From the NCBI GenBank assembly GCA_002269645.1, contig NIVC01004297.1, positions 1 to 48,076 of the forward strand: a stretch of 48,076 bases of DNA, in the 5' to 3' direction. Positions 9,901 to 43,100 of this stretch are shown in pieces; the stretch's first letter is position 1; every line of letters begins with the position of its first letter. The notes below the pieces were generated by a model. It saw only the letters and a program-made list of their open reading frames with translations, had not been told where the DNA came from and ran no database searches. The position numbers and the translations under genes are program-made. The DNA comes from Macrostomum lignano (Eukaryota).

Positions 9901-12900
9901 GTAGGGTGAAGACGGGTAAAAATAAATTGACAGTGTAACAATTACGGTAAGGGCGTTAAGAATTGAAAGCAGATTTATCAGAAGAAGTATTAAAAAAAAG
10001 AAGAAGAAGTATTAAAGCTTCCAGGAAGTTTTAAATACGACAATCAGGCCCTTGAAAAACTTTATTTTAGTTCTAGATCGGTGAAAAAACAAACCCTGAA
10101 ACTATGGAAGAATCAGGTCCTGAAACAATGAAAAAGTCAGGCCCTGAAACTATGGAAGAATCAGGCCCTGAAACTATGGAAGAATCAGGTCCTGAAACTA
10201 TGGAAGAATCAGGTCCTGAAACTATGGAAGAATCAGGCCCTGAAACAATGAAAAAGTCAGGCCCTGAAACTATGGAAGAATCAGGCCCTGAAACTATGGA
10301 AGAATCAGGCCCTGAAACTATGGAAGAATCAGGCCCTGAAACTATGGAAGAATCAGGCCCTGAAACTATGGAAGAATCAGGTCCTGAAACAATGAAAAAG
10401 TCAGGCCCTGAAACTATGGAAGAATCAGGCCCTGAAACTATGGAAGAATCAGGCCCTGAAACTATGGAAGAATCAGGTCCTGAAACTATGGAAGAATCAG
10501 GTCCTGAAACTATGGAAGAATCAGGCCCTGAAACTATGGAAGAATCAGGCCCTGAAACTATGGAAGAATCAGGCCCTGAAACTATGGAAGAATCACGCCC
10601 TGAAACTATGGAAGAATCACGCCCTGAAACTATGGAAGAATCAGGCCCTGAAACTATCGAAGAATCAGGCCCTGAAACTATGGAAGAATCAGGCCCTGAA
10701 ACTATGGAAGAATCAGGCCCTGAAACTATGGAGGGATCATGTCCTGAAACTATGGAGGGATCATGTCCTGAAACTATGGAAGAATCAGGTCCTGAAACTA
10801 TGGAGGGATCATGTCCTGAAACTATGGAAGAATCAGGCCCTGAAACTATGGAAGAATCAGGTCCTGAAACTATGGAGGGATCATGTCCTGAAACTATGGA
10901 AGAATCAGGCCCTGAAACTATGGAAGAATCAGGCCCTGAAACTATGGAAGAATCAGGCCCTGAAACTATGGAAGAATCAGGCCCTGAAACTATGGAAGAA
11001 TCAGGCCCTGAAACTATGGAAGAATCAGGCCCTGAAACTATGGAAGAATCAGGCCCTGAAACTATGAAAAAGTCAGGCCCTGAAACTATGGAAGAATCAG
11101 GCCCTGAAACTATGGAAGAATCAGGCCCTGAAACTATGGAAGAATCAGGTCCTGAAACTATGGAAGAATCAGGTCCTGAAACTATGGAAGAATCAGGCCC
11201 TGAAGCTATGAAAATCTAGCTGAAACTAATAAAGCGGTGTAGACCCTAAAAAAACACAATCCAATTGAAGCATTAAATCGTAACCATACACGTTTAAGTC
11301 CAACTAACCATTTCGCCGATCGCGTTGCACTCGGTCAGTATCTCGTCGGTTTGCGGCAAGTCCATCAGCAGCATAGACATGCAGCCAAACATGCGGCCCA
11401 TGGCCAACGTACCCTCGGGCGACACCTCGTCTAATAGGTTCTCAATGGCCGTGCGACAAGCCTCGACTAATCCAGGCTGACGCATTAAAGCCTCTCGAAT
11501 GCAATAGTGCTGGCATAGACTGAAATCAATTTAGCTTTACTATTAATGATCTGACAACACTCCTTTGACATCTTGAGTGCTAAGCCACCTATCTGCCTCT
11601 CACTCCTAAACCACCCCTAAGCATTTTCATGTTTTTAAAATTCAACTCTTTCGAGAAGGTCAATTTCCAGATTCTATAGACCCGCAAAGGTCAAACAATC
11701 GAATTTGACGATGAGAGAAGTTTTGAGCTAATAAAAAAAACGATCCTGTTTCAGAGGTTGGATTTCATTTGCATTTGTTGTGCAAAACATTAATAAGCTA
11801 CTATTCCAGAAAAAAGAATACTTCTTCGCGTCTACCGGTAGATTTCAAGCCTAAATCATTCTCTCTCAGTCCAACAATCGCTACGGTAGCTATACTCACC
11901 GGTAAGCAGCGTTGCAAAACTCCCCAAACGATTTCGGATGCTCACTTCCGTTAACAAGACCCTCTCGAATGGCTTTGGCAATGTAGTCAATTTTCTTAGA
12001 GTCCTGATCAATCACGCGAACGTAGAACCTTGGACACAGCGCTATGGTGGCCACGAGTTTGTAGGCCTCGGCACGGGCCAGATCGGATTCGCCGCCAGTT
12101 CTTAGCATGAGATGCATATTGGCTCGAATTTTGTTGCTACCAAATATGCCGTAGTCGCTATCGAACAATGCAGTCTCAGTCAAGTCGTACTTGTTGCACA
12201 TCAGCTTGCAAACGTTCGGATCGGAGAGCACACCGATAGCGTATTGAATGCCTTCAAGGCTGACATCTTCCAGCATACGCTTCTCGGTGCACACCATTTC
12301 GAATACGTTGTCAATGACGCCGCGGACTTGCAACGAGCGCACGGCGTTGTCTTTGAAGTCGCGAGAGGCGTGCTTGCACAGCGTGTAGGCAGATTTTAAC
12401 ACCTGGGATTGGTTGGCATGTAGGTTGTTAGTGGAACTAGTATCTTCTGTTGCCTGTTACTAGTGCATTATGTTCTCAGATTGACTGAAATAATGCACTG
12501 TACGAACTTTTTCTGAGGAAAATACGTAATATTGAAACTAAAAAATGTAAATTTCCACGGCTTTTCTACGCCTTAATAATTTAGTGAGTGAGCCATTGTC
12601 GGCTTTTTAGGGCCTGGTGCACTTTGGGGCTGGCCGCTGGACTTTGGCGTGCCCCTTCCCTGCCGTGCACCCTGCCCCGTGCTCTGTGCTGGTTGGCTGC
12701 GGCCAGCCCTGCTGTGGCACGAGGGCTGCGCCCTGCCCCGTGCTCTGTGCTGGTTGGCTGCGGCCAGCCCTGCTGTGGCACGAGGGCTGCGCCCTGCCCC
12801 GTGCTCTGTGCTGGTTGGCTGCGGCCAGCCCTGCTGTGGCACGAGGGCTGCGCCCTGCCCCGTGCTCTGTGCTGGTTGGCTGCGGCCAGCCCTGCTGTGG

Positions 12901-15686: not shown

Positions 15687-16389
15687 CCCTCCTGCGGGGA
15701 AAACTCTGGAGGAAAATCAAGCGGTTGATGGCAAGTTAAAGTGATTTTAATGCTGAGCTATGGCCTCTGAGACTTTACTCGTAATATTAAGTTGACACAT
15801 TTTAGCCAGATGATTATTTGTGTGTTTTTCAAAATTCACCGAAGTATAGTATATACCGGTATAGAGAGCATACAGCGTAAAAGAACCCCCTGTGCGGAAC
15901 TAGCTCCTTTCTTTGTCTTTGCGCCAGCACCAAGGGGACGCCATTATAAGAGTGCGTGTGCATTTCGTAGACTAGACTAGCTACTCGCATTGGCATAAAT
16001 AAACTGGTCGCGGAATGATTAATGTTCTTTAATTATCTCTGCATGGTTCAGATTTTGATTACAATTTTCACATATAACAAACCAACAAGCTGTTTGAATT
16101 TAACATATGCTACATGAATGCATGAAACCGGGTGTAAACAGTGATTTTCTGACCGGAAATGTTTAGACCACTTGATGGCGTTTAACTTATTTTGCCCCTT
16201 CGCACAAGTTAGTAGCATTGCAATACGTGAAACCTCAGCTTGTCAGGCGCAATTAACATGACATATTCGCTTCCTCTATTAAAGTGCCGCTGTGTGCATA
16301 AAGAACGATTTACGACTATAGGCTGGTCTACATACATGTATGTTCAATATGGTGCGGTTCTTGTCGGCTCTTTTGGTGTATATTCTCTT

Positions 16390-17745
16390 CCTAATGTTTT
16401 TTCAGTCTCTTCCTAATAGTTTTGTACAGTCTCTTCCTAATGGTTTTGTACGGTCTCTTTTTAATGGTTTTGTACAGTCTGTTCCTAATAGTTTTGTACA
16501 GTCTCTTCCTAATGGTTTTGTACGGTCTCTTTTTAATGGTTCTGTACAGTCTGTTCCTAATAGTGCTGTACAGCCTATTCCTAATGGTTTTGTACGGTCT
16601 CTTTTTAATGGTTTTGTACAGTCTGTTCCTAATAGTTTTGTACAGTCTCTTCCTAATGGTTTTGTACGGTCTCTTTTTAATGGTTCTGTACAGTCTGTTC
16701 CTAATAGTGCTGTACAGCCTATTCCTAATGGTTTTGTACAGTCTGTTCCTATAATAGTGCTGTAAAGTCTGTTCCTAATGGTTTTGTACGGTCTCTTTTT
16801 AATGGTTTTGTACAGTCTCTTCCTAATAGTTTTGTACAGTCTCTTCCTAATGGTTTTGTACAGTCTGTTCCTAATGGTTTTGTACAGTCTCTTCCTAATG
16901 GTTTTGTACGGTCTGTTTTTAATGGTTTTGTACAGTCTCTTCCTAATAGTTTTGTACAGTCTCTTCCTAATGGTTTTGTACGGTCTCTTTTTAATGGTTC
17001 TGTACAGTCTGTTCCTAATAGTGCTGTACAGCCTATTCCTAATGGTTTTGTACAGTCTGTTCCTATAATAGTGCTGTAAAGTCTGTTCCTAATGGTTTTG
17101 TACAGTCTGTTCCTATAATAGTGCTGTAAAGTCTGTTCCTAATGGTTTTGTACAGCCTATTCCTAATGGTTTTGTACAGTCTGTTCCTATAATAGTGCTG
17201 TAAAGTCTGTTCCTAATGGTTTTGTACAGTCTGTTCCTAATGGTTTTGTACAGTCTGTTCCTAATGGTTTTGTACAGTCTGTTCCTAATGGTTTTGTACA
17301 GTCTGTTCCTAATGGTTTTGTACAGTCTGTTCCTAATGGTTTTGTACAGTCTGTTCCTAATGGTTTTGTACAGTCTGTTCCTAATGGTTTTGTACAGTCT
17401 GTTCCTAATGGTTTTGTACAGTCTGTTCCTAATGGTTTTGTACAGTCTGTTCCTAATGGTTTTGTACAGTTCTGTTCCTAATGGTTTTGTACAGTTCTGT
17501 TCCTAATAGTGCTGTAAAGTCTGTTCCTAATGGTTTTGTACAGTCTGTTCCTAATGGTTTTGTACAGTTCTGTTCCTAATAGTGCTGTACAGTTCTGTTC
17601 CTAATAGTGCTGTACAGTCTGTTCCTAATGGTTTTGTACAGTCTGTTCCTAATGGTTTTGTACAGTTCTGTTCCTAATAGTGCTGTACAGTCTGTTCCTA
17701 ATGGTTTTGTACAGTTTGTTCCTAATGGTTTTGTACAGTCTCTTC
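16390..17745. repeat. 20-bp minisatellite (TTTTGTACAGTCTGTTCCTAATGG-type core with 20/21-bp variants)
   Basis: More than 60 tandem units, with ~120-bp higher-order blocks in the 5' part. Confidence 0.97.
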
Positions 17746-18504
17746 CAAATTTTCCGGCACTGCCTGACCCTCAGAAATGGAATTGCGGTTCTGTACCATT
17801 ATAAATGTATGGATTAAGCATTGTTGTATTGATGGTACTAGCATAGATTTCTAACGTAGATTATAGCCTCTGTCTGGACTAACACTACACTAATATGCAC
17901 CATACATTATGTATAAACATATGACAATTTACAAATTGTCATATGTTCTGAGGACGCAGAAGATCGAGCACACGCATGCTGGCAGGGAGAATTCTGGAGA
18001 GTAGCGTGAGACTGGGGTTATTTATATAGCCGAATAGATCGCGTGAGGTGATTTTTTTAGAATTATTATTTCGGCCAATGCAGCGAAGGCTCTATAGTAT
18101 GACAGACAGAGACTGAGGCAGAGAGAGGGGGGATGAAGATGGATCAAATCAGCTGCCAAGATGAAGAAGCAAAATCTTTCTGGAAGTGAGCACTATTGCA
18201 CTCTCAGCTGTATGCTCTCCCGTGTGAGTCATCTCTATCCCATGTTTTTCTGAACCTCTGGGAGTGGGAATAGAGCTGATGGGATCAGTGGGTAGCGGCT
18301 GTATGGCTGCCGGCTAGGAGAAGCAAAACTGCATAAAATAACATTTTCTGGCAGCGGGAAGGGCTACCCAGGCTAGAGCAGCTTGGCTTGGATTGGGACT
18401 GGTGAGCGCCTGAAGTTCGAGCTGATAGCATTCGACAGCACGAATCGGTGGCAGTCAGAGAACGCTGGCAAAATAAGATTTGAAATGACTAGAATGACAC
18501 TTAA

Positions 18505-19557
18505 ATTCTATATGACCCATTTAGATCCTATATGACCCATGCACTTAGACCTTATATGACCCACTCAGGCCCTATATGCCTATTTAGATCCTATGACCCA
18601 CTCAGACTTTATATGACCAACTCAAATCGAAAATGACCCACTCAGACCTTATATGACCCACTCAGACCTTATATGACCCACTCAGACATTATATAACCCA
18701 TTAAACTCCAAATGACCCACTAAAATCCAAAATGACCCACTAAGATCCAAAATTACCCACTCAAATCCTATATGACCCACTACTATCCTAAATGACCCAC
18801 TACTATCCTAAATGACCCACTCAGATCCTATATGACCCAATCAGATCCAAAATGACCCACACAGATCCTACACTGTATATGACGGACTCAGAACTTATAT
18901 GACCCACTTAGATCAAAAATGACCCACGCAGATCCTATATGACCTACTCAGATTCAAAATGACCTACTCAGATTCAAAATGACCCACTAAAATCCAAAAT
19001 TACCCACTCAGACCTTATATGACCCACTAAAATCCAAAATTACCCACTCAGATCTTATATGACCCACTAAAATCCAATATGACCCACTCAAATCCTGTAT
19101 GACCCACTCAGGTCCTTTATGACCCACTCAGATCCTTTATGACCCACTCAGATCCTTTATGACCCACTTAGATCCTTTATTACCCACTCAGATCCTTTAT
19201 GACCCACTCAGATCCTTTATGACCCACTCAGATCCTTTATGACCCACTCAGATCCTTTATGACCCACTCAGATCCTTTATGACCCACTCAGATCCTTTAT
19301 GACCCACTCAGATCCTTTATTACCCACTCAGATCCTTTATGACCCACTCAGATTCTTTATGACCCACTCAGATCCTTTATGACCCACTCAGATCCTTTAT
19401 GACCCACTCAGATCCTTTATGACCCACTCAGATCCTTTATGACCCACTCAGATCCTTTATGACCCACTCAGATCCTTTATGACCCACTCAGATCCTTTAT
19501 GACCCACTCAGATCCTTTATGACCCACTCAGATCCTTTATGACCCACTCAGATCCTT
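18505..19557. repeat. 20-bp minisatellite (GACCCACTCAGATCCTTTAT)
   Basis: About 50 units, degenerate at the 5' end and near-perfect from ~19100. Confidence 0.97.
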
Positions 19558-19899
19558 TTGAAAGTCTTGAGTCAACCATAACGCCAATCCATAGTCTCGG
19601 AAGCAGAGCAGACTAAGCATAGCTCGTATAAACAGTAAGCTGAGGACATTTCACCCAATACACATACGGCTAAGCATATATTGATGGCGATAACCGCCCC
19701 AGGGCTTGAAGGGCAAATTGGACTTGCCATCTATAATCCGTATAGGCTAAAGTTATGTCTTCTCGCATAGTAAGCGTGCGATAGAAAATGAGGAGCGGAC
19801 AGAGGACACGAGAATCCGGGGAGAGGGTAGAAAGACGGGAGATACCGCCCAAGGGGGGAATTCTCAGTTCCCCTTCCCTTCCTTCCCGAGGAAGGATCT

Positions 19900-21859: not shown

Positions 21860-24800
21860 GAAGGTGACGACATCCCACATTCCCAGCAACTGCAGTTTGG
21901 ACAGTGCAATCTCTGCTCAAAGCGGTGAGTAAATGTACATCAATGTACAGTATTACAATGTACAATGTACAATGTACAATGTACAGGAGCTAACCTTCCT
22001 GATAAAAAGTCGTTGAAAATTATGCAGAGTAATTAATTGAACTTTTATCAATCTAGAATTATGATTGAGCATTAATCAAATATCAATCTGAAATCAATCC
22101 GACATCAATCTGACATCCATCTGATATCAATCTGACATCCTGACTAAGCATCAGTCTGACATCATGGCTAAGCCTCAGTCTGACATCATGACTAAGCATC
22201 AGTCTGGCATCATCACTAAGCCTCAGTCTGACATCATCACTAAGCCTCAGTCTGACATCATCACTAAGCCTCAGTCTGACATCATGGCTAAGCCTCAGTC
22301 TGACATCATGGCTAAGCCTCAGTCTGACATCATGACTAAGCATCAGTCTGACACCTCGTGACTAAGCCTCAGTCTGACATCATGGCTAAGCCTCAGTCTG
22401 ACATCATGGCTAAGCCTCAGTCTGACATCATGACTAAGCATCAGTCTGAAATCATCACTAAGCCTCAGTCTGACATCATGACTAAGCCTCAGTCTGACAT
22501 CATGACTAAGCATCAGTCTGACATCATCACTAAGCCTCAGTCTGACATCATGACTAAGCATCAGTCTGAAATCATCACTAAGCCTCAGTCTGACATCATG
22601 ACTAAGCATCAGTCTGACATCATGGCTAAGCCTCAGTCTGACATCATGGCTAAGCCTCAGTCTGACATCATGGCTAAGCCTCAGTCTGACATCATGGCTA
22701 AGCCTCAGTCTGACATCATGGCTAAGCCTCAGTCTGACATCATGACTAAGCATCAGTCTGAAATCATCACTAAGCCTCAGTCTGACATCATGACTAAGCA
22801 TCAGTCTGACATCATGGCTAAGCCTCAGTCTGACATCATGACTAAGCATCAGTCTGACATCATCACTAAGCCTCAGTCTGACATCATGACTAAGCATCAG
22901 TCTGAAATCATCACTAAGCCTCAGTCTGACATCATGACTAAGCATCAGTCTGACACCTCGTGACTAAGCATCAGTCTGACATCATGACTAAGCATCAGTC
23001 TGAAATCATCACTAAGCCTCAGTCTGACATCATGGCTAAGCCTCAGTCTGACATCATGGCTAAGCCTCAGTCTGACATCATGGCTAAGCCTCAGTCTGAC
23101 ATCATGACTAAGCATCAGTCTGAAATCATCACTAAGCCTCAGTCTGACATCATGGCTAAGCCTCAGTCTGACATCATGGCTAAGCCTCAGTCTGACATCA
23201 TCACTAAGCCTCAGTCTGACATCATGGCTAAGCCTCAGTCTGACATCATGACTAAGCCTCAGTCTGACATCATGGCTAAGCATCAGTCTGACATCATGGC
23301 TAAGCCTCAGTCTGACATCATGGCTAAGCCTCAGTCTGACATCATGGCTAAGCCTCAGTCTGACATCATGGCTAAGCCTCAGTCTGACATCATGACTAAG
23401 CATCAGTCTGAATCATCACTAAGCCTCAGTCTGACATCATGGCTAAGCCTCAGTCTGACATCATGGCTAAGCCTCAGTCTGACATCATCACTAAGCCTCA
23501 GTCTGACATCATGGCTAAGCCTCAGTCTGACATCATGACTAAGCCTCAGTCTGACATCATGGCTAAGCCTCAGTCTGACATCATGGCTAAGCCTCAGTCT
23601 GACATCATGGCTAAGCCTCAGTCTGACATCATGGCTAAGCCTCAGTCTGACATCATGACTAAGCCTCAGTCTGACATCATGGCTAAGCCTCAGTCTGACA
23701 TCATGACTAAGCCTCAGTCTGACATCATGGCTAAGCCTCAGTCTGACATCATCACTAAGCCTCAGTCTGACATCATGGCTAAGCCTCAGTCTGACATCAT
23801 CACTAAGCCTCAGTCTGACATCATCACTAAGCCTCAGTCTGACATCATGACTAAGCCTCAGTCTGACATCATGGCTAAGCATCAGTCTGACATCATGACT
23901 AAGCATCAGTCTGACACCTCGTGACTAAGCATCAGTCTGACACCTCGTGACTAAGCATCAGTCTGACATCATGGCTAAGCCTCAGTCTGACATCATGACT
24001 AAGCATCAGTCTGACATCATGACTAAGCCTCAGTCTGACATCATGGCTAAGCCTCAGTCTGACATCATGACTAAGCATCAGTCTGACACCTCGTGACTAA
24101 GCATCAGTCTGACATCATGGCTAAGCCTCAGTCTGACATCATGACTAAGCCTCAGTCTGAAATCATCACTAAGCCTCAGTCTGACATCATGACTAAGCAT
24201 CAGTCTGACATCATGGCTAAGCCTCAGTCTGACATCATGGCTAAGCCTCAGTCTGACATCATCACTAAGCCTCAGTCTGACATCATGGCTAAGCATCAGT
24301 CTGACATCATGACTAAGCATCAGTCTGACACCTCGTGACTAAGCATCAGTCTGACATCATGGCTAAGCCTCAGTCTGACATCATGACTAAGCCTCAGTCT
24401 GAAATCATCACTAAGCCTCAGTCTGACATCATGGCTAAGCCTCAGTCTGACATCATGACTAAGCATCAGTCTGAAATCATCACTAAGCCTCAGTCTGACA
24501 TCATGGCTAAGCCTCAGTCTGACATCATGACTAAGCCTCAGTCTGACATCATGGCTAAGCCTCAGTCTGAAATCATCACTAAGCCTCAGTCTGACATCAT
24601 GGCTAAGCCTCAGTCTGACATCATGACTAAGCCTCAGTCTGACATCATGGCTAAGCCTCAGTCTGACATCATGACTAAGCCTCAGTCTGACATCATCACT
24701 AAGCCTCAGTCTGACATCATGACTAAGCCTCAGTCTGACATCATGGCTAAGCATCAGTCTGACATCATGACTAAGCATCAGTCTGACACCTCGTGACTAA

Positions 24801-27447
24801 GCATCAGTCTGACATCATGGCTAAGCCTCAGTCTGACATCATGACTAAGCATCAGTCTGACATCATGACTAAGCCTCAGTCTGACATCATGGCTAAGCCT
24901 CAGTCTGACATCATGACTAAGCCTCAGTCTGAAATCATCACTAAGCCTCAGTCTGACATCATGACTAAGCATCAGTCTGACATCATGGCTAAGCCTCAGT
25001 CTGACATCATGGCTAAGCCTCAGTCTGACATCATCACTAAGCCTCAGTCTGACATCATGGCTAAGCATCAGTCTGACATCATGACTAAGCATCAGTCTGA
25101 CACCTCGTGACTAAGCATCAGTCTGACATCATGGCTAAGCCTCAGTCTGACATCATGACTAAGCCTCAGTCTGAAATCATCACTAAGCCTCAGTCTGACA
25201 TCATGGCTAAGCCTCAGTCTGACATCATGACTAAGCATCAGTCTGAAATCATCACTAAGCCTCAGTCTGACATCATGGCTAAGCCTCAGTCTGACATCAT
25301 GACTAAGCCTCAGTCTGACATCATGGCTAAGCCTCAGTCTGAAATCATCACTAAGCCTCAGTCTGACATCATGGCTAAGCCTCAGTCTGACATCATGACT
25401 AAGCCTCAGTCTGACATCATGGCTAAGCCTCAGTCTGACATCATGACTAAGCCTCAGTCTGACATCATCACTAAGCCTCAGTCTGACATCATGACTAAGC
25501 CTCAGTCTGACATCATGGCTAAGCATCAGTCTGACATCATGACTAAGCATCAGTCTGACACCTCGTGACTAAGCATCAGTCTGACATCATGGCTAAGCCT
25601 CAGTCTGACATCATGACTAAGCATCAGTCTGACATCATGACTAAGCCTCAGTCTGACATCATGGCTAAGCCTCAGTCTGACATCATGACTAAGCATCAGT
25701 CTGACACCTCGTGACTAAGCATCAGTCTGACATCATGACTAAGCATCAGTCTGACACCTCGTGACTAAGCATCAGTCTGACATCATGGCTAAGCCTCAGT
25801 CTGACATCATGGCTAAGCCTCAGTCTGACATCATGGCTAAGCATCAGTCTGACATCATGGCTAAGCCTCAGTCTGACATCATGGCTAAGCCTCAGTCTGA
25901 CATCATGACTAAGCCTCAGTCTGACATCATGGCTAAGCCTCAGTCTGACACCTCGTGACTAAGCATCAGTCTGACATCATGGCTAAGCCTCAGTCTGACA
26001 TCATGGCTAAGCCTCAGTCTGACATCATGGCTAAGCCTCAGTCTGACACCTCGTGACTAAGCAAGAACCTCTCGAAATGATTTGCATGCTTTTTAGCTCA
26101 TCAGGCCGCAGCACACGTTTAGCTACAGTTGCTCCAGTTGAGCCAGTGAGGGTTGTACTTTTATTTCGAACAGAAAAACACTCTACCAGTAGTTCAAAGC
26201 ATATAAAATTCAGGCCCACAATCTCACGGCTGCGGCCCGCTAACCAATAAATCGATATTGATGAAATGCGCTATACGCAGACACCGGTGCGGCTTGGTTG
26301 CTTTTTTTGCTCGAGCCGTCCCTGAGCTCTAGGCAAACTCTCATTCGCTATCCTACCCCTCTCTCTCGTGAGGGCCTCACTCCAGGACTCAGCTGGGTTA
26401 AACTGATCTCTCATTTCTACTTTCCTTTCCTATATGCATACATATATGTTTATAACAGCGCTGCAGAGTGTTGGCTGATAGCTAAAATACTATACACTGT
26501 ATGCCGCATATGCATACGATATTATGCTACATCGAGATGCTGATGCCACAAATCCCTTAATGGCCATGGACGCGTTTGTTCGCCTTGCGTAGCGTAGCCT
26601 CCACTGTGAAAGTCTTTTTTGCTTCTGCTTAAAAAAGTGAAGAGAATGCGAGAGACGAGAGAGATGAGAGAGAGAGAGAGAGAGACTGAGAGAGAGAGAC
26701 AGAACGCTCTTACCACGTAACTTACACAGCCATAAAATTCCAGTCAAGACGAGAACAAGAAATTCGCTTCTTGACATCTGAAGCGCAATTCTGGGTTTAA
26801 ACTTCTACCCTTTCATGGTAGGCTACCGTTCGGGATTATACAGTTTAATTCTTGAAATTCTGGACTGCTACTGTATCGCTACTGATGAGGAAGGAGGCTG
26901 AAACTAAATTATCAAACATTAGTATCGGATATATGCATGTTGATAAAGATCAATATCACTTTTCTGCCCGAGAATCCGATGGTAAACTCTACGATTATGG
27001 CTCTGAACTACACTTGGCTCCTACATGCTACGAATGAAAAAATGTTGTATTTTGGCAATATCATGAAAAATGCCTTCTGTAAAGCTGCGAAACTTATTTA
27101 TAGAAATATGCGAGCAATATCTTCGGATTGAAGCTTAAATTAATATCTGATATTAAATATCCGCAGGAGGGCTGTGGGGATCCTTGCGCAACACCTGCCC
27201 GTTTCCCGCTTCTGATCCTCAGGTAGAGCTGCAGTTTACAGCTCTGCGTAGACCGAGTAGTTTTGTTTGGTCAAGGGGTCGGCAAACTCCGACCGGGGAA
27301 GCCTCAAGGACCACTAGAAGTTACTTTTGTAACGGTAACTTCTAGTTGTCCTTGGGAAGCCTCTCTATCCGGCCCGGCCCCCGGGTTCTTTGAAACTTTA
27401 CAATAGCAATCCGACCCGCTCACGGTTTGTGTCTCTTCTCAGCTCTC

Positions 27448-33060: not shown

Positions 33061-33224
33061 CTGTTTTGATGTTGTTCAACGTAAGGGTTGAAAATTAACT
33101 GAGTACTTGTAGTCCCGTTGATAAGCTAGAAACCTGACAGGTTTCATTAAAATATTTGGACCTTGTGAAGCTTCAAGCTTGTGAAGTGTACTGCGTACAA
33201 AGCGGAACGATATTCTGGGCTATC

Positions 33225-33540
33225 CTGTGTCATCCTGTGATATCTGTGTCATCCTGTGTCATCTTGTGACATCTGTGCCATCCTGTGATATCCTGTATCA
33301 TCCTGTATCATCCTGTGTCATCCTGTGTCATCTTGTGACACCCTGTGATATCTATCCTGTGTCATCCTTCGCCATCCTGTGATATCCTGTATCATCTTGT
33401 GTCATTCTGTGTCATCTTGTGAAACCCTGTGACATCCTGTGTAATCATGTGCCATCCTCTGGTAACCTGTGTCATCATGTGACATTCAATGATATGTGCC
33501 ATTCTGTCATCCCGTGACTCCTGTGACATCCTGTGACCAG
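33225..33540. repeat. Degenerate 10-bp repeat (TCCTGTGTCA / TCCTGTGATA)
   Basis: About 30 units. Confidence 0.9.
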
Positions 33541-33771
33541 ACATCAAATGACTTAACTATGCAGTGCGTAGCATCTTAGCTCTCCTCTGACTTCATCAGG
33601 TAATTGTACTCTAAGTTAATTCATTCCTTTTTCCATTGGGTTCTACCTAACGTGTACTGTAGTATATGAGTAATCTGATGCGCATTCCTAATCTCTTCAC
33701 TCTTATTAATCAGCTCGATAACCAGTAGTGAAAAGGTACCAAACTGTGCAAATATGAATAGAAATCTGACA

Positions 33772-36700
33772 CAAGGACTACTTAAGTATCGTTTATAGAA
33801 GGACGCTGCACTCGCGGTTCGTGTAATTTTTTTTGAAGGCCAATTTTCGCCGAAAAATACATTAACGAGATACAAAAAATTCACGATTTTCATCTTCAAT
33901 GGCTTGCTCAGACTGCCTACAACCCTGCTGAAAAGAAAAAACTGCTGAAACTTATCAAAAAGACCTAGTGTATTCGCTCCTCTATTGTATTTCGCCAAGT
34001 TAGTGTCCTTGACACGTTTACTTTTAAATACTTCGTATTTTTTCGAGGGTTTTCAATTCTGTAATGTTAAATGTTAAAGGTTGGATTAAAGTGTTAGTTT
34101 CTCTCAATAATCAGTAGTTTCTTTAGCATTCTATGATGACTGCTTTCTATGTCTTTATTTTTTTGGTAAATTTAAATTAGCTATAGACATTCTATATTAA
34201 ATGTTAGTCTATACCCTGGCTATGCCTGATATATAATAATATCTAGGGCCTACTATGCTTTTTTAGCATGTTCTACAAAAATGTTGTGTAGAAAGGACCT
34301 ACTGATTAGTTTATGAGTAGATCGTTATAAAGTATTATTCTTAATTTGAAGGTAGATAGATATTAGATACTTGCATATTGTATAGAAGGTACTAATTTTA
34401 CTATTCTGTCAAATATCTGTAGATTAGGCTTCTTAAACGGTTCTACTGGATACAAAAGTTCTATTTTCAGACTTGTCTTGAAACTTTATATTTTATTTAA
34501 ATGATAGGCCTAACAACATATTGAATTTATTTCTGCTGTTTGGAGAGCAGTTTTTTAACCTAGTCTAGTTTAATGGAACCAAGATATATTCAATACTCAG
34601 GCCTTGCATTGAATTTAAAATATAAATATTTATATATAGAAAGTGATTCTAAAGGAAAATGCGTATAATAGACTTTAGAAGACAAATTTTCAACTTTAGT
34701 AATACTATTGAAGTGATTTAGTATAGAATTGATTATATTGGCCTGTTGGGATAAAAGCAATACAGTATTGTAGCAATTTTTTTACTAGATATAATGTATA
34801 GAAGCTGTATATATTTCTTTTTGTTAGCTTCAGAATTTCTGCAATGCCAATGAAATGCTGTCTTCCAAAGTGTACAAGTAACTACAAATCTGGTGAGAAG
34901 GTGACAGTGTATAGCTTTCCAAAGGATAAAGAAGACTACAGCATGTGGATCCGAGCTTTGCCACCAAATGTTAAGGTATGGTGCTATTGCTGCTATTGCA
35001 TATTCTTGTCTTGCTTAATTCACATGCTAATGGAACATTAGTACAATATGATATAATACTTACTGTTTTAGAGTCCATCTAAATACATGGGCATTTGCCA
35101 AAAACATTGGCCAACAAATGCACCAATGTTAAAGGTCAAGCGATTCATGCGCCCTATGGACCCACCAAGTGTATTCCCAAATCTTCCAACAGGCTCTCTT
35201 CGCCTGACTGAGCCAAGTAAGTATATCTCATAGCAAGGTTAAATATTACAGTTTGTACCAAATGATAGGCTTTCTATAATATTTTACTTAATTAAGTTTT
35301 TGTCTGATTTCATACCTTACATATTATTATTCTTACTTCAGAGCACTCTAGAGATCAGTTTTTGAATAATTGTTGCTAGGGAATGAATTTAATGAATTGT
35401 GGGGATGCAGGTCACGGCTATCTAATGGGTCACGAAATTGTCTTTAAGGTGTACTGCAATCAGACAGATTGGAGGCCGAGTTCGCTCTCTACCGCCAGGG
35501 CCACGGCGGGTGTTACTACATAACAGTCGAGCAAGTTATGGCCAGTGCTCGGCTGCACCGAATGAAATTGTACGGAGCGCTTCAGAACAGCTTTGAGGCT
35601 CATGAGCCGGCGACATGCTGTTCCGATGGGATGAAGGACTCTGATCTAGAGGTGTTTGATCAGCTTCAAGACAAGATCAGCCACAATACAGATGAGGAGA
35701 ATGCTTCTTTGTACTATATTTCCGGTTACGTTGCTGCTAAAGAGCATCTTCCAGAAGTTTTTGAAGCATTTGCAACTGAGTTTCCTGGCGGTAGCGAATT
35801 TACATCGCTGCTATCTCGTGGCAAGCTCCGGCACCCGCCAGAGTGGCTTTTAGTTTTCTCCAGCCTGTGCTATGCTTTTTTCTCCTCTGTCAAGATCCAC
35901 TGCGTCAACTATTGTGTCCGATCTTTTATTAACGTTTTTGAAGCTTTCATGGATGTAACTGTTTCAGATCCAGCTCAGGTTAGCCGCATTTCCAGGAGGT
36001 TAGCTAACACATTTTTTAAAGGACTCGTGCGTCGTGATTCGGACCATGTACGAGAGACGCCCGGCAGTGGACGGCGTCTGCGAAAGTTAGCATCAAGTTA
36101 GTTATGAGCTGTTTGTACGCTTTTTGAGAAATCCGTGACATTCTATCAACACACCGAGTTCGTATAAAACTTGAACACCCATTGTACACTTAGACACCTC
36201 TAATTTAAACAAACGAAGTGGACACTGGAAAATATCGAAATATCCAACCAAAAATGCAATAAGCCAAAATCGGAGGCAACATAGCTCGTAGAATTGAAGC
36301 GAACATTGTTAATTGATTGAGCATGTAATTTGACCCATAGTCCATGGTTGTCCATGTTTTATACAGACCCAATTCACATTCACGTCATTGAATATGCTTA
36401 TGCCTTCATAAGTTGGTTTATGCATCTGTTGCTGCTTTCATACGTTGGTTTAAACATTTGTTGCTGCTTTCATAAGTTGGTTTCTGCATTTTACTGCTGT
36501 TGCCTACCCAATAGTTGCCACAGTTTCTATACACTATACACTATACACAGTCTTATATTTGCAGCCTTACATACATATTTGCCTTACTGTAGCTATCAAT
36601 TGAGATTAAAGTACAATGAGCTGCTGTGCAACAAGCAACCAGTTCAGTTCAACATTTTTTGTTTCCAGTCCAACAACGATACATCGATTGTTATCAGCAC

Positions 36701-37110
36701 TGGCATTGTGCCAGTTTCTCTGCTTTTGCTCTTTGTTATTTTATTGTTGAAAAGATCAGGGATGGCTTTTGAAAAGTACAGACTGACGGGCTTCGTTCTT
36801 TGTTAATCTCATCTCATTTTAATTGGATTACATTAGCTCAATTGTCGGAATTATCCTTTAAATATCCTAGCTTTATTGTTCTATAATAAAGAAGGGGGTA
36901 ACAGTACCTTGCTGTACATTTCTCGCGAATACATGTAGTTGCAGCCGAAACTGTTCACTCATCTAAAAGAGGAATAAATTCTGAGCAACCCCGTGAAAAA
37001 ACTAGACCTCTACATGCAACCATTTAAAAATAACAGCATTTTGAAAAATGGCCTTCAAAAAAATCTACACCATTCGGGAGTGCAGCGTCCTTCTACTTAA
37101 GTAGTCCTTG
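33772..37110 (+). mobile_element. P-element-superfamily DNA transposon, internally deleted, 3339 bp
   Basis: 17-bp perfect TIR CAAGGACTACTTAAGTA at both ends, extended imperfectly to ~70 bp (TAGAAGGACGCTGCACTC...TTTTTTTGAAGGCCA). 8-bp TSD ATCTGACA at 33764-33771 and 37111-37118. Internal THAP domain and transposase C-terminus. Confidence 0.93.
34844..36101 (+). CDS. Truncated P-element transposase: THAP zinc finger plus C-terminal region
   Basis: Exons 34844-34975 and 35072-35216 give a C2CH THAP domain (MKCCLPKC...FPKD...W...ICQKHW...PPSVFP). 35449-36101 encodes LQSDRLEAEFALYRQGHGG, LYYISGYVA and LSRGKLRHP, motifs typical of P/THAP9 transposase C-termini. The middle (~first two catalytic Asp and insertion domain) is absent. 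Confidence 0.8.
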
Positions 37111-37126
37111 ATCTGACATTTCTCAC

Positions 37127-40100
37127 CTCATGCACTCGCCGCTCTTGGATCTCTCGTTGACGCTGCTGCTCACGCTGCTCTTCCTCCAGCTCGCGTCGGA
37201 TCTCCTTCTCTAACTCGTCGTCATCAGACATCATTTTGTGCGACTCCTGTTTAGGGATAGTTTTTTTAAATTAAAACTGTTAACTGTGGATTGCAATAGA
37301 TTTTACTAGAGTAAAAAGCTTGACGTTATAGTGCCGACTAAAAAGTTTATTTAGACTTTGTGTACTTTTTATCAGAGGCAGGAGCTGTGTGCACTTTAAG
37401 CGACATTGTCACACAGCCTGCGAGAGGCACTACTGCCCGTCCCGCCGACCCCCCTTAGCAGGCACACAAGCGCAAGGATACGTACGCAGTCAAACACACA
37501 GGCACACACTCACACAGGAGTGTACAGCGGCCCTAACTTTTATTATCGTTAGGCATGTACACTTCACTGTGCCTTCTTGTGGGTCGGCCCTCAACGGTAT
37601 TAATTGCACGAGCAGAGCCAAGCCGAGATTCCAATTTAGCCCCAAATTAGTGCAACTGCAGTTGGGAATCGAGCCCGGACCGCTGGCACGTAAGAGCGCC
37701 GGCCCCCTGACTTTGCGTACTTAGCTAATTCCCACCGCAACTCCGTGATCTACGCTCACCTCCAAGTGTTTCATTAGCACAGCAACCACAACATTCACCA
37801 GGACAAACTGCGCCATGAGCACGAATACCACGAAATAGATTGGCGCAATTATAGGCGAGACGCAGCAGTTCTTGACGCAGTTGTCGCTAGGATCGCATTT
37901 CTCCCGCAGGGTGTCCTTCATGATGCCATTCCAGTTGTCTCCAGTGGCGATGCGAAACAGCGTTAGAAATGCCATGCCGAAGTTTTCGAAGTGGGCGTGT
38001 CTGCTCAGGCCAACACACGGATTGTCTAATGAGCACTCTGAAATGAAAAAATATTATGTCATTATCTTTTTTATAATTTTGGGGTATTTCAACAAAAATG
38101 CTTTTAAAATTATAGGTGCATTAATTATTGGATGGTAAAATTCAAGTCAGTTGTTTAGTATCTTAGTATCTACATTATAAACACGAAAAATAGTAATCTC
38201 ACCAAGTCTCCCAAACAGCTCCACACCCAGAGCGGCAAAGATGAAGAACAGTAGAAAGAAGAGCAGACCGAGATTGCCGACCTGCGGCAATGCCTGAATG
38301 ACGGTGTCCAGCAGTGCTCTGATGCCTTTGGCCATCTTGAGCAGTTTCAGCACTTCAAAATCAATGTTAACAATTTTTGTGCTATATTGAATGAAAGTTC
38401 CTAGGGTTGGGTAGGGTAAAGTAGGGTAGGGTAGAGTAGGGTAGGGTAGGGTAGGGTAAAGTAGGGTAGGGTAGGGTAGGTCAAGTAGGGTAGGGTAGAG
38501 TAGGGTAGGGTAGGGTAGGGTAAAGTAGGGTAGGGTAGGGTAGGTCAAGTAGGACTAGGGTTAGAGTAGTATTATGGCTAGAATAATCTCCCTGTCAGCC
38601 ATAAAAGACTCACGGGGGACATTGCTGAGATGTCAAGGCTTATGGGGGAATGGCTGAAATGCTTGGCTCATTAGGGGGGGGGGGTCGTTCAGATGCTTTG
38701 AGCCAAAGCTCATAGATGATCCGACTTATATCTTAGGCTACATAGCTGGCTTTCAGGGCGGAGACTTTGTTGCTTTAAAAATAATTCTCCCCTAAAAAAA
38801 TTAACAATACGGACAGTACAAGGTCATAACCTACATGTAGTTTATTCAAAAATTTCTTTGTTGCCTCCCCAACGACGTGGGCGCTTATTGGTATTGAAAA
38901 TTCTAATAAAAAAACTCATCGACAGCAGCTTACCTCTGGCTATTCGAAGAACTCGCATAACCCGAATAATGGTTGGATTTATTGGAATCAGCGTGTACTG
39001 AACCTCCTCGAGAATGATCCCGGCAATGGAAAGTGCAACGATTATTACATCGAGCTGGTTCCATCTGGAGTAGTTTGGAGTTGACGTGAGCCAAGAGTGC
39101 TAAACGTTTGCTAAATTGTTGACACGATTTACGCAACTACATAGATTTCTTACTTATCCTTGAGGTAGCGTTGCAGTCCGAGAGCAAAAATTTTGAAAAT
39201 CGCTTCAAACACAAACACGGTTGAAAATGCATAGTTAGTAATCTTGAGTCCCATTTCGAACTCCTGTGGTAAAATGAATTGATTGTTTTTATTGCGCAGT
39301 CTAAACGTCAAAAATATTCTCAATTAAAGTTAATAAAGGCTTACCGGCGGCATCATATAGAATTCCATTGCCATGGTGATTACGTTGACACCAATAATTG
39401 TTGCTATAATTAGGTCAAAGTACTTGCTTTCTACGAATCGGTGCACTGTACGCCGAGTTCTCGAATATTTTGACCAATAGGGTATCTCACGAATACCTGA
39501 AATGTAGTTGTCATTTAGCAATGTTCATTTTTATCGTAGATTTTTTGCGAGTGCCAATTTCAGCTACCTTCCGCCGCTGGCACGAATTGCCAAATTTCAA
39601 CTTACGCCTTCGTTTCTTCTCCATCCTTCTGGCTCGCTTGGCAGCTCTTCGCGCCTTCTCTTCTTTCTCCTGGCTTGCCCGGCATTTGTGAAAGTTTTCA
39701 ACGACAACGCCGACAAACATGTTAAGCACGAAGAAGCCTACTAATAGTAGGAACGAGATAAAGTACAGCAGCAGCCACTCGTTGTTGTTCTCCTTCGGCT
39801 GCTGATTTTCGCCCACAGCGTCCAGTCCCGTGTACATGATTTGAACCCAGCCGTCTCTTGATGACAAAACAAACAGCGCCATAAGTGCCTGGCCAAGGTT
39901 GTCAAAGTTGTACTTGTGCCTTTCCCAGGTGTTGCGCTTGTCCGCCAAACAGTTGGTTTTGTTGGTGACGCCTGTCAAATCGGGTCCTTTGCAGTAGAAA
40001 AACTTTCCTTTAAAAAGTTGTACACCAAGAATGCCAAAAATGATGAAGAATGTGCAACAGATTAACACGATGTTGCCTATGGGTCTAAGCGAAGACAGCA

Positions 40101-43100
40101 GAGTTTGCACGACCAATTTGAGCCCTGGTGCCCTGCTAATCACGCGCAAAGGTCGTAAAGTTCGTAACAGGCGGAAAACCCGTAAAATTCCAAAAATCCG
40201 ATTAGTACTACCAAACAGTAGTACCACGAGGATATCAATCAGTGAAATGAACACGAGAGCTCCGTCCATTATGTTCCAACCGCTTCGCAAATAGGAATGA
40301 CGACTTATAATGAGACCGTGGGATACTAGCTTAATTAGCATCTCGACCGTAAATATGACCGTAAATATATTGTTGCTGAGACTGAGAAATTGACGCTCCT
40401 GAAATTGTTTGTGCAATTACATCATCACATATGTAACAACTAAAAGTACATTATTACAACAAAGTACAAAAAAACTTACTGTACTATTCTGTGGAATCGA
40501 AGGTCTTTCCATAGCCAGAGTGATGCAGTTCAGAGCGATGAAAAATAGTACTGTGTAGTCGAACCATCGCTGCTGCGTTATCTTATTGCACAATAAGCGG
40601 AATCTGACGGACACGTAGGTGATTATTAATAAATATGCGAGCTTAACCTATCAGTAATAATCCAAAACACCCTGATGAGCTTCGTTCACTTCTCCACCTA
40701 CATTACCGTTTCTTAATCGGTAATTTAAATATCCATACAGTGAAAAATAGTTTCTGCAATCTCTTATTCAAGATTTCCGGATTGCAAAGATAGACAGTAG
40801 ATTTACCTGTTAGTTGGACTGAACAGATACAATGCGTAGTCTTCGCGATCTTTGAAACAGCCAGTGGTCGGTACAACATACTCGCTGAGCCATTTCAGCT
40901 GCTGCAAAATTGGTAGATGAGAGCTTCTATTGTAGAAATCGTTGGAACGGCGGAAGCACTTTTCTGACAGCTACGATATAATACAGTAGACATTTGAAGG
41001 TGGCTATCACATGTTCGAAATCCTTCATAAGATCAAAAATTCACTTGATTAAGTATTCAAGTCGTCAAATTGTTTTGGTTTTTTTTTCGACGCTGTAAAA
41101 AGTGAACCTATGATGTATCCCACTTTGCCTGTACGCCTTGTCTATGTAACTAGTGCTTTGCAAGCGGAGATTCTCACTAAGTAACCTCCGCTGCCATAGA
41201 CAATAAAATTAACGCCTTGAGCCAGAGTGAGGTTGGTTGAGCACTTTCTTCTACCACAGACAAAACGTGTCCCGCGAATACGAGCTACAGGGAGCGGAGA
41301 ATACTCATAATCTCTGCAAATCTAGTCAATATTCTCCGTTCCTTGCATTCGTGGGATACATTTCAATAACCAACTGAAACTTGGAGAATGTCTATGGCAA
41401 ATCTGCATAGACATTCTCCTCGTTTCACTAGGTTATTATACATGTTTCGAGCTAGTGATATTCTTGTAGTTGTGAAAGCAACCACAGGCACTTCTCCCAC
41501 TGCCTCTTACCAAATCGTCCTCCGTACTAGCGTTGCTGTCACGCTCCTCTTCGGCTCCGGATTCTCTTTCGACTGGACGTCCGGCAGAGCCTTCGCATGC
41601 CCGCCGGCTGCCCAGCTGCGATCGGTTACTGCTGAAACTTCCAGCGCCGTCTTCGTCGTCCTTGTTATTGTCCAAGTTGCGCATTCCCAATTCGTCGGCT
41701 TGATTTTCAATTGGCGACGAGCGGAGAAACGGGCCGCGACCGTTGCTGCCGTTAGACTGATGGCGAGCCACGAGTTGGCCGTTGCAACCACTGGAAGGTT
41801 CATCGGTGGACTTTACATTTTTACTTTTAAACAGTCCTTAAAAATTTCTGAATTGAATCTTGTTTTTGTAATTAGGTCGAATTCGATACTCGTAGTATTT
41901 ATGATAGACGATTTCGACTTAGTAACAATAAATGTAAAATGTGATGCACATTTCGGACAATATGTGAAAACGCGAATTAGCGGTTGGCAACAAAGAACTT
42001 AAATTAAATCCGATTTACCTTCCAATGTGCTTTTAAAGTGTGTAAATCGAATGATTTGTAGGTGCACACTTGAGATACGCGCTGAGATGCGTTGGATTTT
42101 AAGAAATCAATTTAACTACGAGACCTATAGGAAAACTAGCCTTTTGATCAACAGATTTATGCTGCAAGTCCTAAGACGAAAGTTCCTTTTGTGGCTTTGG
42201 ATGCCCAGCTAAAAGTATACGACTATGATAAAAATACTCGCATGGGTGTTAGCACAAGGGTTCTTTTCCGTAAGTATCAATCTTGTGATCGACTTTAATC
42301 AAAGGTAGAGAAAACTTTAAAAATGCACTTGATTAGTTATAAAAATAGGAAGTAAAACACCTGACTACGACGATAAAAATGCTGCATATGAATACGATGG
42401 ATTGATGTGTAGTGATTAAATATATACGGAAGTGCTTGTAAGTTTCTGATAGCTCTAATTTTACCGTTCCATTTTATGTTTTGCATTTTAAAAAAGTGGA
42501 GTTGTCACGCCTACGTACAATAAAAACTTGGAAAATCCTATTGTTAGGACCAGGTTTTCCTTTCTGTGGGTATTTTTCCTCAAACTGCACTCAATAGACT
42601 TCTTTTTTGTTCCTAATTGGCCGCACAAGGAGTGGTAAACTTTATTAGTGCATCGAACCAATAATTATTCAGTCGAGTAAATAGTGAGAAAATATTAATA
42701 CATTTGCATAATCCAACAGAGACATTGTGCGCGATTATCCGTGAATTATTTGGATTGGTTTGATTTTTATACATCTAAAAAAGTGACGACACGATGCAAT
42801 CTCAGGTTGCGCAGGAGGTAAGAAAGCTCCGTCTGTTACGTCACAAGTCACTATAATCACCAAGACGTATTGCACACTGAAAGTAAAATAATTTTTACTT
42901 TCTCTTGATGACAGTACCTGACAGTATGGCGCCTAAAATAAAACGTGAACTTGTCTAATGGTTGGCCGCTATTATTGCAGACTGGCAGCTCAAGCAGCTG
43001 CGCCACATTGCTGTTGCTTTTGTTGCACAAACTAGCGCTGCTGCTGCCGCTGAGGGAGCACCGACTGACGCTGGTACAGCTGCTTGCTGAGCTGCTGCTG

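Follow-up and report, generated by a model that had tools for sequence, protein, structure and literature searches.

A window of 48,076 nucleotides (contig NIVC01004297.1 of assembly GCA_002269645.1, positions 1 to 48,076 of the forward strand) from the flatworm Macrostomum lignano contains, at positions 33772-37110, a 3,339-bp feature that is probably a young, non-autonomous, internally deleted copy of a DNA transposon of about 5 kb belonging to the P superfamily (P element/THAP9-like), inserted in antisense orientation within an intron of a gene for a T-type calcium channel; if the copy is transcribed, its likeliest product is a THAP-only peptide of 104 amino acids (aa). An earlier reading of this DNA made without database searches (the sequence-only reading) had described an intact-ended P element in a non-insect animal, whose deleted transposase gene can splice in frame into a protein that joins a THAP domain to the transposase C-terminus and that might act as a repressor. 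The analysis reported here indicates that the copy is an ordinary defective transposon, for which the in-frame 309-aa "repressor" is possible on paper and is probably not the main product.

Ends and Superfamily Membership of the Element

The termini are as the sequence-only reading had described them: the element is bounded by a perfect terminal inverted repeat (TIR) of 17 bp, CAAGGACTACTTAAGTA, and the same 8-bp target-site duplication (TSD), ATCTGACA, is found on both flanks. A search of the 48-kb window for the TIR sequence, allowing up to three mismatches, returned these two matches only, against 0.15 expected. The inverted repeat extends imperfectly to approximately 77 nt, including a 53-nt subterminal inverted repeat, and the repeat blocks GAAGGACGCTGCAC and CGTGTAATTTTTTTTGAAGGC of its left arm are kept in an element of a sister family from the same genome (L006, described below); the left subterminal inverted repeat is a candidate transposase-binding region. 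A perfect 10-bp palindrome, TACTTAAGTA, lies within the TIR (33779-33788 and 37094-37103), and we take its ACTTAA core to resemble the Drosophila transposase-binding consensus. Comparison of the two ends (33772-33850 and 37040-37110 in the window; 4688-4765 and 9860-9931 in L006) revealed the same asymmetry in both M. lignano families, namely a 9-nt spacer (GTATCGTTTA-like) that is present at the 5′-end and absent from the 3′-end and that separates the terminal block CA[A/C]GGACTACTTAA from the subterminal blocks GAAGGACGC..CAC / CGTGTAATTTTTTTTGRAGGC.

These ends, together with the coding remnants, place the element in the P superfamily. Perfect 8-bp TSDs also flank a second copy of the element (AGCAAATG) and the sister-family element (TGAATAGG); the TIRs are accompanied by subterminal repeats; an N-terminal THAP domain of the C2CH type is encoded; and the C-terminal domain (CTD) of the transposase was recognized by means of a family profile and a fold match. 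The catalytic core is gone from the window copy and is kept in its relatives, so that the window copy is a defective rather than an autonomous member.

Coding Remnants and Full-Length Relatives

The THAP assignment, which the sequence-only reading had based on two clean exons, was borne out by a Pfam search (PF05485, E = 6.5e-10, 40.1 bits against a cutoff of 23.9), in which the domain occupies the first 92 aa and the C2CH ligands are in place (C5/C6, C10, C53, and H56). The downstream open reading frame (ORF) was also correctly identified as the transposase C-terminus, and its link to P transposase could be established only through full-length relatives and a profile: searched alone, the 216-aa C-terminal ORF gave no Pfam or PDB sequence match related to P transposase and only a handful of homologues, which led to full-length proteins. 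Over its entire length, the last exon aligns with the 210-220 C-terminal aa of transposases of 860-870 aa, including P0012, a continuous 862-aa protein with a THAP domain, a TNP-like RNaseH_N domain and a matching C-terminus. In two Logan contigs (L002 and L005), a homologous C-terminal ORF lies just downstream of an ORF of 455-513 aa, which in L002 contains a TNP-like RNase H N-terminal domain according to the Pfam scan. The relatives carry PF21787 and PF21788, and one of them (P0102) passes PF12596, the 87-kDa transposase C-terminal family.

The most informative relative within M. lignano is the sister-family element L006 (NIVC01000293.1, 4688-9931), which is 5,244 bp long, has related ends (CACGGACTACTTAA…) and contains an intact four-exon ORF of 864 aa (132, 142, and 1,656 nt, followed by the last exon) encoding a THAP domain, a helix-turn-helix (HTH), a DDE core and the CTD. 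This element is a candidate autonomous transposon; its GenBank model (P0011) ends at 650 aa by reading into the last intron. The THAP exons of the window copy correspond to residues 1-91 and its last exon to residues 644-862 of the 864-aa ORF, and no counterpart of residues 92-643 was found anywhere in the window.

A profile built from 30 full-length relatives matches the Drosophila P transposase structure 6p5a_A (E = 2.5e-33) as well as 6p5a_B, the separately modelled CTD chain (E = 1.7e-5). In the profile alignment, the family-invariant D, D, and E residues correspond to D230, D303, and E531, which form the catalytic triad of the Drosophila enzyme (PMC7776569). The equivalent of the catalytic Glu is the first E of QSDRLEAEF (GAG, 35472-35474), five codons into the last exon, and both catalytic Asp residues belong to the part of exon 3 that was lost. 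For the C-terminal ORF, AlphaFold2 predicts an all-helical fold (pLDDT 81.7), for which Foldseek again ranked 6p5a_B first among PDB structures (probability 0.98, template-modelling score 0.65 on the target, root-mean-square deviation 3.8 Å, but E = 0.35). The downstream ORF is the C-terminus of the transposase, more precisely the last RNase H helix plus the all-helical CTD.

The deletion removed approximately 1.6 kb of exon 3, comprising the HTH, both catalytic Asp residues and the GTP-binding insertion, which amounts to about 550 codons of the catalytic core. The copy is accordingly non-autonomous and, because any product would lack these parts, the 104-aa and 309-aa proteins would alike be catalytically dead; the sequence-only reading had proposed both properties.

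A Second, Differently Deleted Copy

A protein search with the 309-aa product identified the M. lignano GenBank protein P0009 (BOX15_Mlig019577g1, 202 aa), which is 100% identical over the THAP exons. Its model belongs to the second copy of the element, which lies elsewhere in the same assembly (L004; NIVC01000736.1 of GCA_002269645.1, 8935-12417), with a perfect 8-bp TSD of its own. The segments 33772-35355 and 35484-37110 of the window are shared with this copy and differ from it by three substitutions in 3,211 nt, all of them non-coding, at 33916 (the only change in the 5′ 1.58 kb), 36404 (within a tandem repeat), and 36552. To judge from this divergence the window copy is young, as the sequence-only reading had surmised. 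The coding sequence is identical between the copies, so that a ratio of non-synonymous to synonymous rates is impossible to obtain and the comparison makes no statement on selection.

The second copy retains 272 further nucleotides of exon 3 (KHSRD/VQRRGILLNQ…VSVSEL) and is without window positions 35356-35483, and its ORF enters the last exon out of frame (…STARATAGVTT, stop). The 202-aa model thus consists of the THAP domain, 97 aa from exon 3 and an 11-aa frameshift tail. The presence of two copies with different, clean internal deletions suggests that they are independent deletion derivatives of one master element.

Gene Layout and Splice Sites

In the relatives L002, L005, and L006, the last intron splits the Gly codon of …YVLLG… in phase 1 and ends before (D/E)(L/F)QSDRLE. 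The window acceptor, TTTAAG/GT GTA CTG CAA TCA GAC (intron end at 35448), is the same acceptor in the same phase (G/GT), and on this comparison it is the native acceptor of the last intron. Intron 2 is also in phase 1 in L006, where exon 3 measures 1,656 nt, a multiple of three, and its removal leaves an open frame of 312 aa. Since introns 2 and 3 are both in phase 1 in the relatives, the in-frame join is a built-in property of the gene structure and not a coincidence of the deletion. Joining 35216^35449 in the window connects exons of 132, 145, and 653 nt into 930 nt without an internal stop codon, which encode the 309-aa sequence THAP...LTEP-S-VLQSDRLEAEF...LRKLASS, exactly as the sequence-only reading had calculated.

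A second acceptor is available upstream. Identity with the second copy ends at 35355, which places the left breakpoint of the deletion at 35355/35356 and identifies 35341/35342 as the native exon-3 acceptor. This acceptor is intact and proximal (125-nt intron), has an equivalent in L006, exhibits a higher pyrimidine fraction than the last-exon acceptor at 35448 (0.75 vs. 0.50) and is the one used in the P0009 model of the 99.9%-identical sister copy; the GenBank gene models of this assembly come from genome-guided RNA-seq assembly (PMC5730564). When it is used, the ORF ends after 12 more codons, resulting in a 104-aa THAP-only peptide (...LTEPKHSRDQFLNNCC, stop), and the end of this alternative frame (...KHSRDQFLNNCC, stop) is the one that the sequence-only reading had given for it.

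From the left breakpoint to the 35448 acceptor there are 93 nt, which probably comprise the 27-nt end of exon 3 and a 66-nt remnant of the last intron. The end of exon 3 and the donor in L006 (TTTAAATATGTCATGCTAG/GTATGAAT) align locally with this stretch in matching codon register, which is suggestive only (p about 0.05); the compared sequences are TTT GAA TAA TTG TTG CTA G in the window and TTT AAA TAT GTC ATG CTA G in L006. The 27-nt piece reads S V F E (stop) L L L G, vs. F-S/K-Y-V-L-L-G in the relatives, with the stop at the Tyr codon, and the position of the last-intron donor is occupied by GG, not GT. When the same 93 nt were aligned locally with the last introns of L002 and L005, no significant match was obtained. 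It was also observed that the two apparent changes (the TAA stop and the GG donor, 35367-35384) fall within about 20 nt of the deletion junction, vs. 3/3,211 differences from the sister copy elsewhere; they could reflect error-prone repair or misalignment.

Upstream of the THAP exons, a sequence resembling a strong splice acceptor (...TTGTTAGCTTCAG/) has its last nucleotide at 34833, 10 nt ahead of the ATG, and might function as a trans- or cis-splice acceptor. The coding-sequence model of P0009 begins at the equivalent of window position 34838. The features of the locus are listed in Table 1.

Table 1. Positions of the element, its gene remnants and the adjacent host exon in the M. lignano window.
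Feature	Positions	Strand	Remarks
Left TSD ATCTGACA	33764-33771		identical to 37111-37118
Left TIR CAAGGACTACTTAAGTA	33772-33788	+	17/17 complementary to right TIR
Left subterminal inverted repeat	33796-33848	+	87% complementary to 37043-37095
AT-rich 5′ non-coding region	33849-34843	+	upstream of the ATG; no ORF with homologues
Exon 1, THAP first part	34844-34975	+	132 nt; donor AAG/GTATGG; 100% identical to P0009
Exon 2, THAP second part	35072-35216	+	145 nt; phase-1 end; donor A/GTAAGT; same intron position and phase in L006
Native intron 2	35217-35341	+	125 nt; acceptor ...TTATTATTCTTACTTCAG/
Exon 3, first 14 nt (KHSRD)	35342-35355	+	left breakpoint 35355/35356; identity with L004 stops here
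Probable exon 3, last 27 nt	35356-35382	+	local alignment to L006 exon-3 end
Last-intron remnant (probable)	35383-35448	+	66 nt; native acceptor TTTAAG/
Last exon, RNase H C-terminal helix and CTD	35449-36101	+	653 nt; stop TAG 36099-36101
3′ non-coding region	36102-37042	+	holds 32-nt tandem repeat, 2.8 copies, at 36401-36491
Right subterminal inverted repeat	37043-37095	-	87% to left counterpart
Right TIR	37094-37110	-	exact reverse complement of left TIR
Right TSD ATCTGACA	37111-37118		identical to left TSD
Host Cav3 exon	37127-37246	-	donor GTGAGA; same-strand upstream exons match Cav3

Origin and Predicted Products of the Copy

The window copy would have arisen from a full-length master by internal deletion, plausibly through abortive gap repair as in Drosophila P elements. 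It would be able to move only with transposase supplied in trans by a full-length relative, an enzyme that would recognize the conserved terminal ~77 bp. If the copy is transcribed, the exon-2 donor would pair with the 35341/35342 acceptor, and the 104-aa THAP-only peptide is ranked as the most likely product, ahead of the 309-aa fusion, because the native acceptor is intact, proximal and pyrimidine-rich and is used in the model of the sister copy. The 309-aa fusion of THAP, a single Ser and the C-terminal segment would be a minor isoform at best, since its formation requires the skipping of a 41-nt exon-3 remnant that appears to be without a donor. The sequence-only claim of an in-frame THAP plus C-terminus splice therefore stands insofar as the phase-1 acceptor is genuine and conserved, but not as regards the preferred product, because the stronger acceptor ends the ORF at 104 aa. 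Either product could in principle dampen transposition by occupying THAP-binding sites, and a repressor function of the window copy would be argued by analogy with Drosophila.

Several points weigh against this interpretation. An exon-3 remnant of only 41 nt, apparently donor-less, would under exon definition favor skipping and hence the 309-aa product, and the 35448 acceptor, although its pyrimidine tract is weak, is proven native. Reads from other near-identical copies may have contributed to the RNA-seq model at L004. In three protein searches, no full-length copy of the exact family of the window element was found, the best candidate in the same genome being the sister family at approximately 50-55% identity; from sequence comparison we infer the full-length master, the exact right breakpoint and mobilization in trans.

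Alternative Explanations

The strongest competing view, which we consider a fair way less probable than the interpretation given above, is that no transcript is made from the copy, which would be a dead passenger in the host intron, yielding no protein and keeping its frames open only through its youth. With only three substitutions separating it from the other copy, all non-coding, the intactness of its frames is uninformative; no promoter was identified in it, and neither a gene model nor an identical protein for the window copy was present in the collections searched. Nevertheless, the near-identical sister copy, whose 5′ 1.58 kb is shared, has a transcript-derived model, so that the upstream region is probably promoter-competent.

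The interpretation favored by the sequence-only reading, in which the exon-2 donor joins mainly the last-exon acceptor (35216^35449) and the 309-aa protein of THAP plus CTD serves as a KP-like or dominant-negative repressor, appears unlikely, and so does the mode of action that goes with it, in which the protein occupies transposase sites on the element ends and/or docks its CTD into transposase assemblies. No stop interrupts the frame, and the two splice sites are native and in phase 1; exon 3 is symmetric (1,656 nt, phase 1/phase 1) in the full-length relative, where skipping would be in frame too; and the remnant of exon 3 is only 41 nt long, seemingly without a donor. Packing of the CTD would suit a dominant-negative effect, and a THAP-CTD protein might plausibly interfere with the transposase. 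A comparable architecture is found in a P-like element of about 1.7 kb on a Tara Oceans marine metagenome contig (L007:149-1889, ERZ976238), which has 92-nt TIRs (87%) starting with CAGGGAGTACTAA and no clean 8-bp TSD that could be seen, and which contains an independent, intronless, in-frame deleted ORF of 380 aa (P0100), in which THAP plus about 125 aa are joined directly to the CTD. P0100 shows that predicted THAP…CTD deletion products arise elsewhere, as a single case among the 150 best hits. Set against these points, the stronger proximal acceptor at 35341/35342 is intact and used in the transcript model of the sister copy, a collection of 5.8 billion clusters yielded no exact match to the 309-aa product, and the coding sequence, being the same in both copies, is silent on selection. 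The segment immediately after THAP, where the dimerization zipper of the Drosophila protein is situated, is deleted as well; approximately 100 aa that follow THAP in the relatives are missing from the window copy, and their dimerizing role in this family is putative.

A broader form of this idea, to which we give somewhat less credence still, is that skipping of exon 3 in this Macrostomum lineage, from full-length or deleted copies, yields an isoform of THAP, Glu-helix and CTD as a built-in, splicing-generated regulator of transposition, of which the window copy, with exon 3 reduced to a donor-less stub of 41 nt, would be a constitutive producer. Such skipping would always be in frame because the whole core (HTH, both Asp residues and the GTP-binding insertion) resides in one symmetric phase-1/phase-1 exon.

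The possibility that the missing middle is an assembly collapse and that the real locus is full-length, which the sequence-only reading had named as a potential refutation, is very improbable: repeats abound in M. lignano assemblies, which are also partly redundant (PMC5730564), but the junction is clean and without a flanking direct repeat, the second copy on an independent contig has a different clean deletion, and among P elements it is usual for copies to be internally deleted (PMC7776569). Least credible of all is a domesticated host THAP gene or a hAT element. THAP domains are often domesticated, and the 8-bp TSD and terminal CAAGG fit hAT (motif YARNG), but domestication conflicts with the intact TIRs and TSD and with at least two copies that are 99.9% identical at different sites, the profile match to Drosophila P transposase contradicts both options, and the hAT assignment was rejected on transposase homology, the relatives matching P transposase across the whole core and CTD and having no BED or hAT-dimerization domain.

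Genomic Context and Significance

The host gene, to which the element is antisense and in one of whose introns it lies, specifies a T-type (Cav3) calcium channel on the minus strand; its exons at 37127-40416 encode domain III, the domain IV S4-S5 region, the pore/S6 segment and the proximal C-terminus. Domain III, at 39511-40416, matches Cav3 structures (9ayg_A, E = 4.6e-181). The exon for the domain IV pore/S6 segment ends in …VLMKHLE, and the next exon (37246-37127), which is probably part of the proximal C-terminus of the channel, ends in …RRVHE/GTGAGA. The TSD occupies intron positions +9 to +16, 8 nt past the 5′ splice site, and the splice-site consensus is untouched.

Elsewhere, the window is rich in minisatellites (3007-26062 and 33221-33485), including arrays of 24 nt x 163 at 22127-26062, 24 nt x 57 at 16377-17750, 24 nt x 46 at 10094-11210, and 20 nt x 52 at 18511-19558. 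These arrays give rise to long spurious ORFs on both strands and fit the reported repeat richness of M. lignano. At the left end (235-2961, plus strand), ORF fragments resembling ankyrin repeats (…DADGWTPLLRAADRGHTQVIEILS…, …NGASPLHRA…) suggest the presence of an ankyrin-repeat gene.

Flies and fish are well known to harbor P-type transposons that include internally deleted copies, and the element itself is unsurprising in this respect. A literature search found no paper on P elements in flatworms, which is not proof that none exists. Near-identical copies, perfect TSDs and an apparently intact 864-aa transposase gene of a sister family coexist in this genome, which suggests that P-like elements are active now, or were very recently, in M. 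lignano. This flatworm is a regeneration model in which transposon-based transgenesis with foreign elements failed (PMC5730564); an endogenous element with defined ends, including one of the L006 type, could serve as a tool for this purpose. The exon layout, in addition, provides a concrete hypothesis of splicing-based self-regulation outside Drosophila.

Comparison With Known P Elements

The closest well-characterized system is the P element of Drosophila melanogaster, which likewise has an 8-bp TSD and terminal and subterminal inverted repeats that are spaced differently at either end. Its transposase gene, like that of the full-length relative from M. lignano, has four exons and encodes an N-terminal THAP domain, an RNase H core carrying a GTP-binding insertion, and a helical CTD, and it has internally deleted copies that, like the window copy, keep both ends and the THAP exons (PMC7776569). 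The sequence identity between the two is only approximately 20-25% and is detectable only by profile. The M. lignano element further differs in its TIR (17 bp and perfect vs. 31 bp), in its full length (about 5 kb, with about 1 kb of non-coding sequence at each end, vs. 2.9 kb) and in the position of the last intron, which lies five codons before the catalytic Glu, whereas that of Drosophila lies after the RNase H domain. The 9-nt spacer at the 5′-end only is reminiscent of the unequal spacing of 9 vs. 21 bp in Drosophila.

Small internally deleted elements of Drosophila can encode repressors, such as the 207-aa KP protein (PMC7776569), and the sequence-only reading had likened the window copy to this type. 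The likeness holds for an internal deletion in which both ends and the THAP exons are retained; it fails for the region after THAP, because KP retains the adjacent dimerization region, whereas in the window copy the deletion starts 14 nt into exon 3 (five codons past exon 2), removing that region and allowing THAP to be joined to the CTD. The 202-aa model of the sister copy is a closer analogue of KP. A second Drosophila repressor, the 66-kDa protein, is made by retention of the third intron, as established experimentally (PMC7776569), and the hypothetical exon-skipped isoform of M. lignano would resemble it as an inactive, THAP-bearing product of alternative RNA processing. The 66-kDa protein keeps most of the core and is without the C-terminal third, whereas the 309-aa product, proposed from sequence alone, would have the opposite composition; if true, the exon-skipped isoform would be the mirror image of the intron-retention repressor.

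Among P-like elements of non-insect animals, the zebrafish Pdre (THAP9-type) element shares short TIRs (13 bp in zebrafish), subterminal inverted repeats, 8-bp TSDs and several internally deleted copies that suggest recent mobility (PMC7776569). The M. lignano element differs from it in its host phylum, Platyhelminthes, and in belonging to a different clade of the superfamily, as well as in the 99.9% identity of its copies and the apparently intact 864-aa ORF of a sister family in the same genome.

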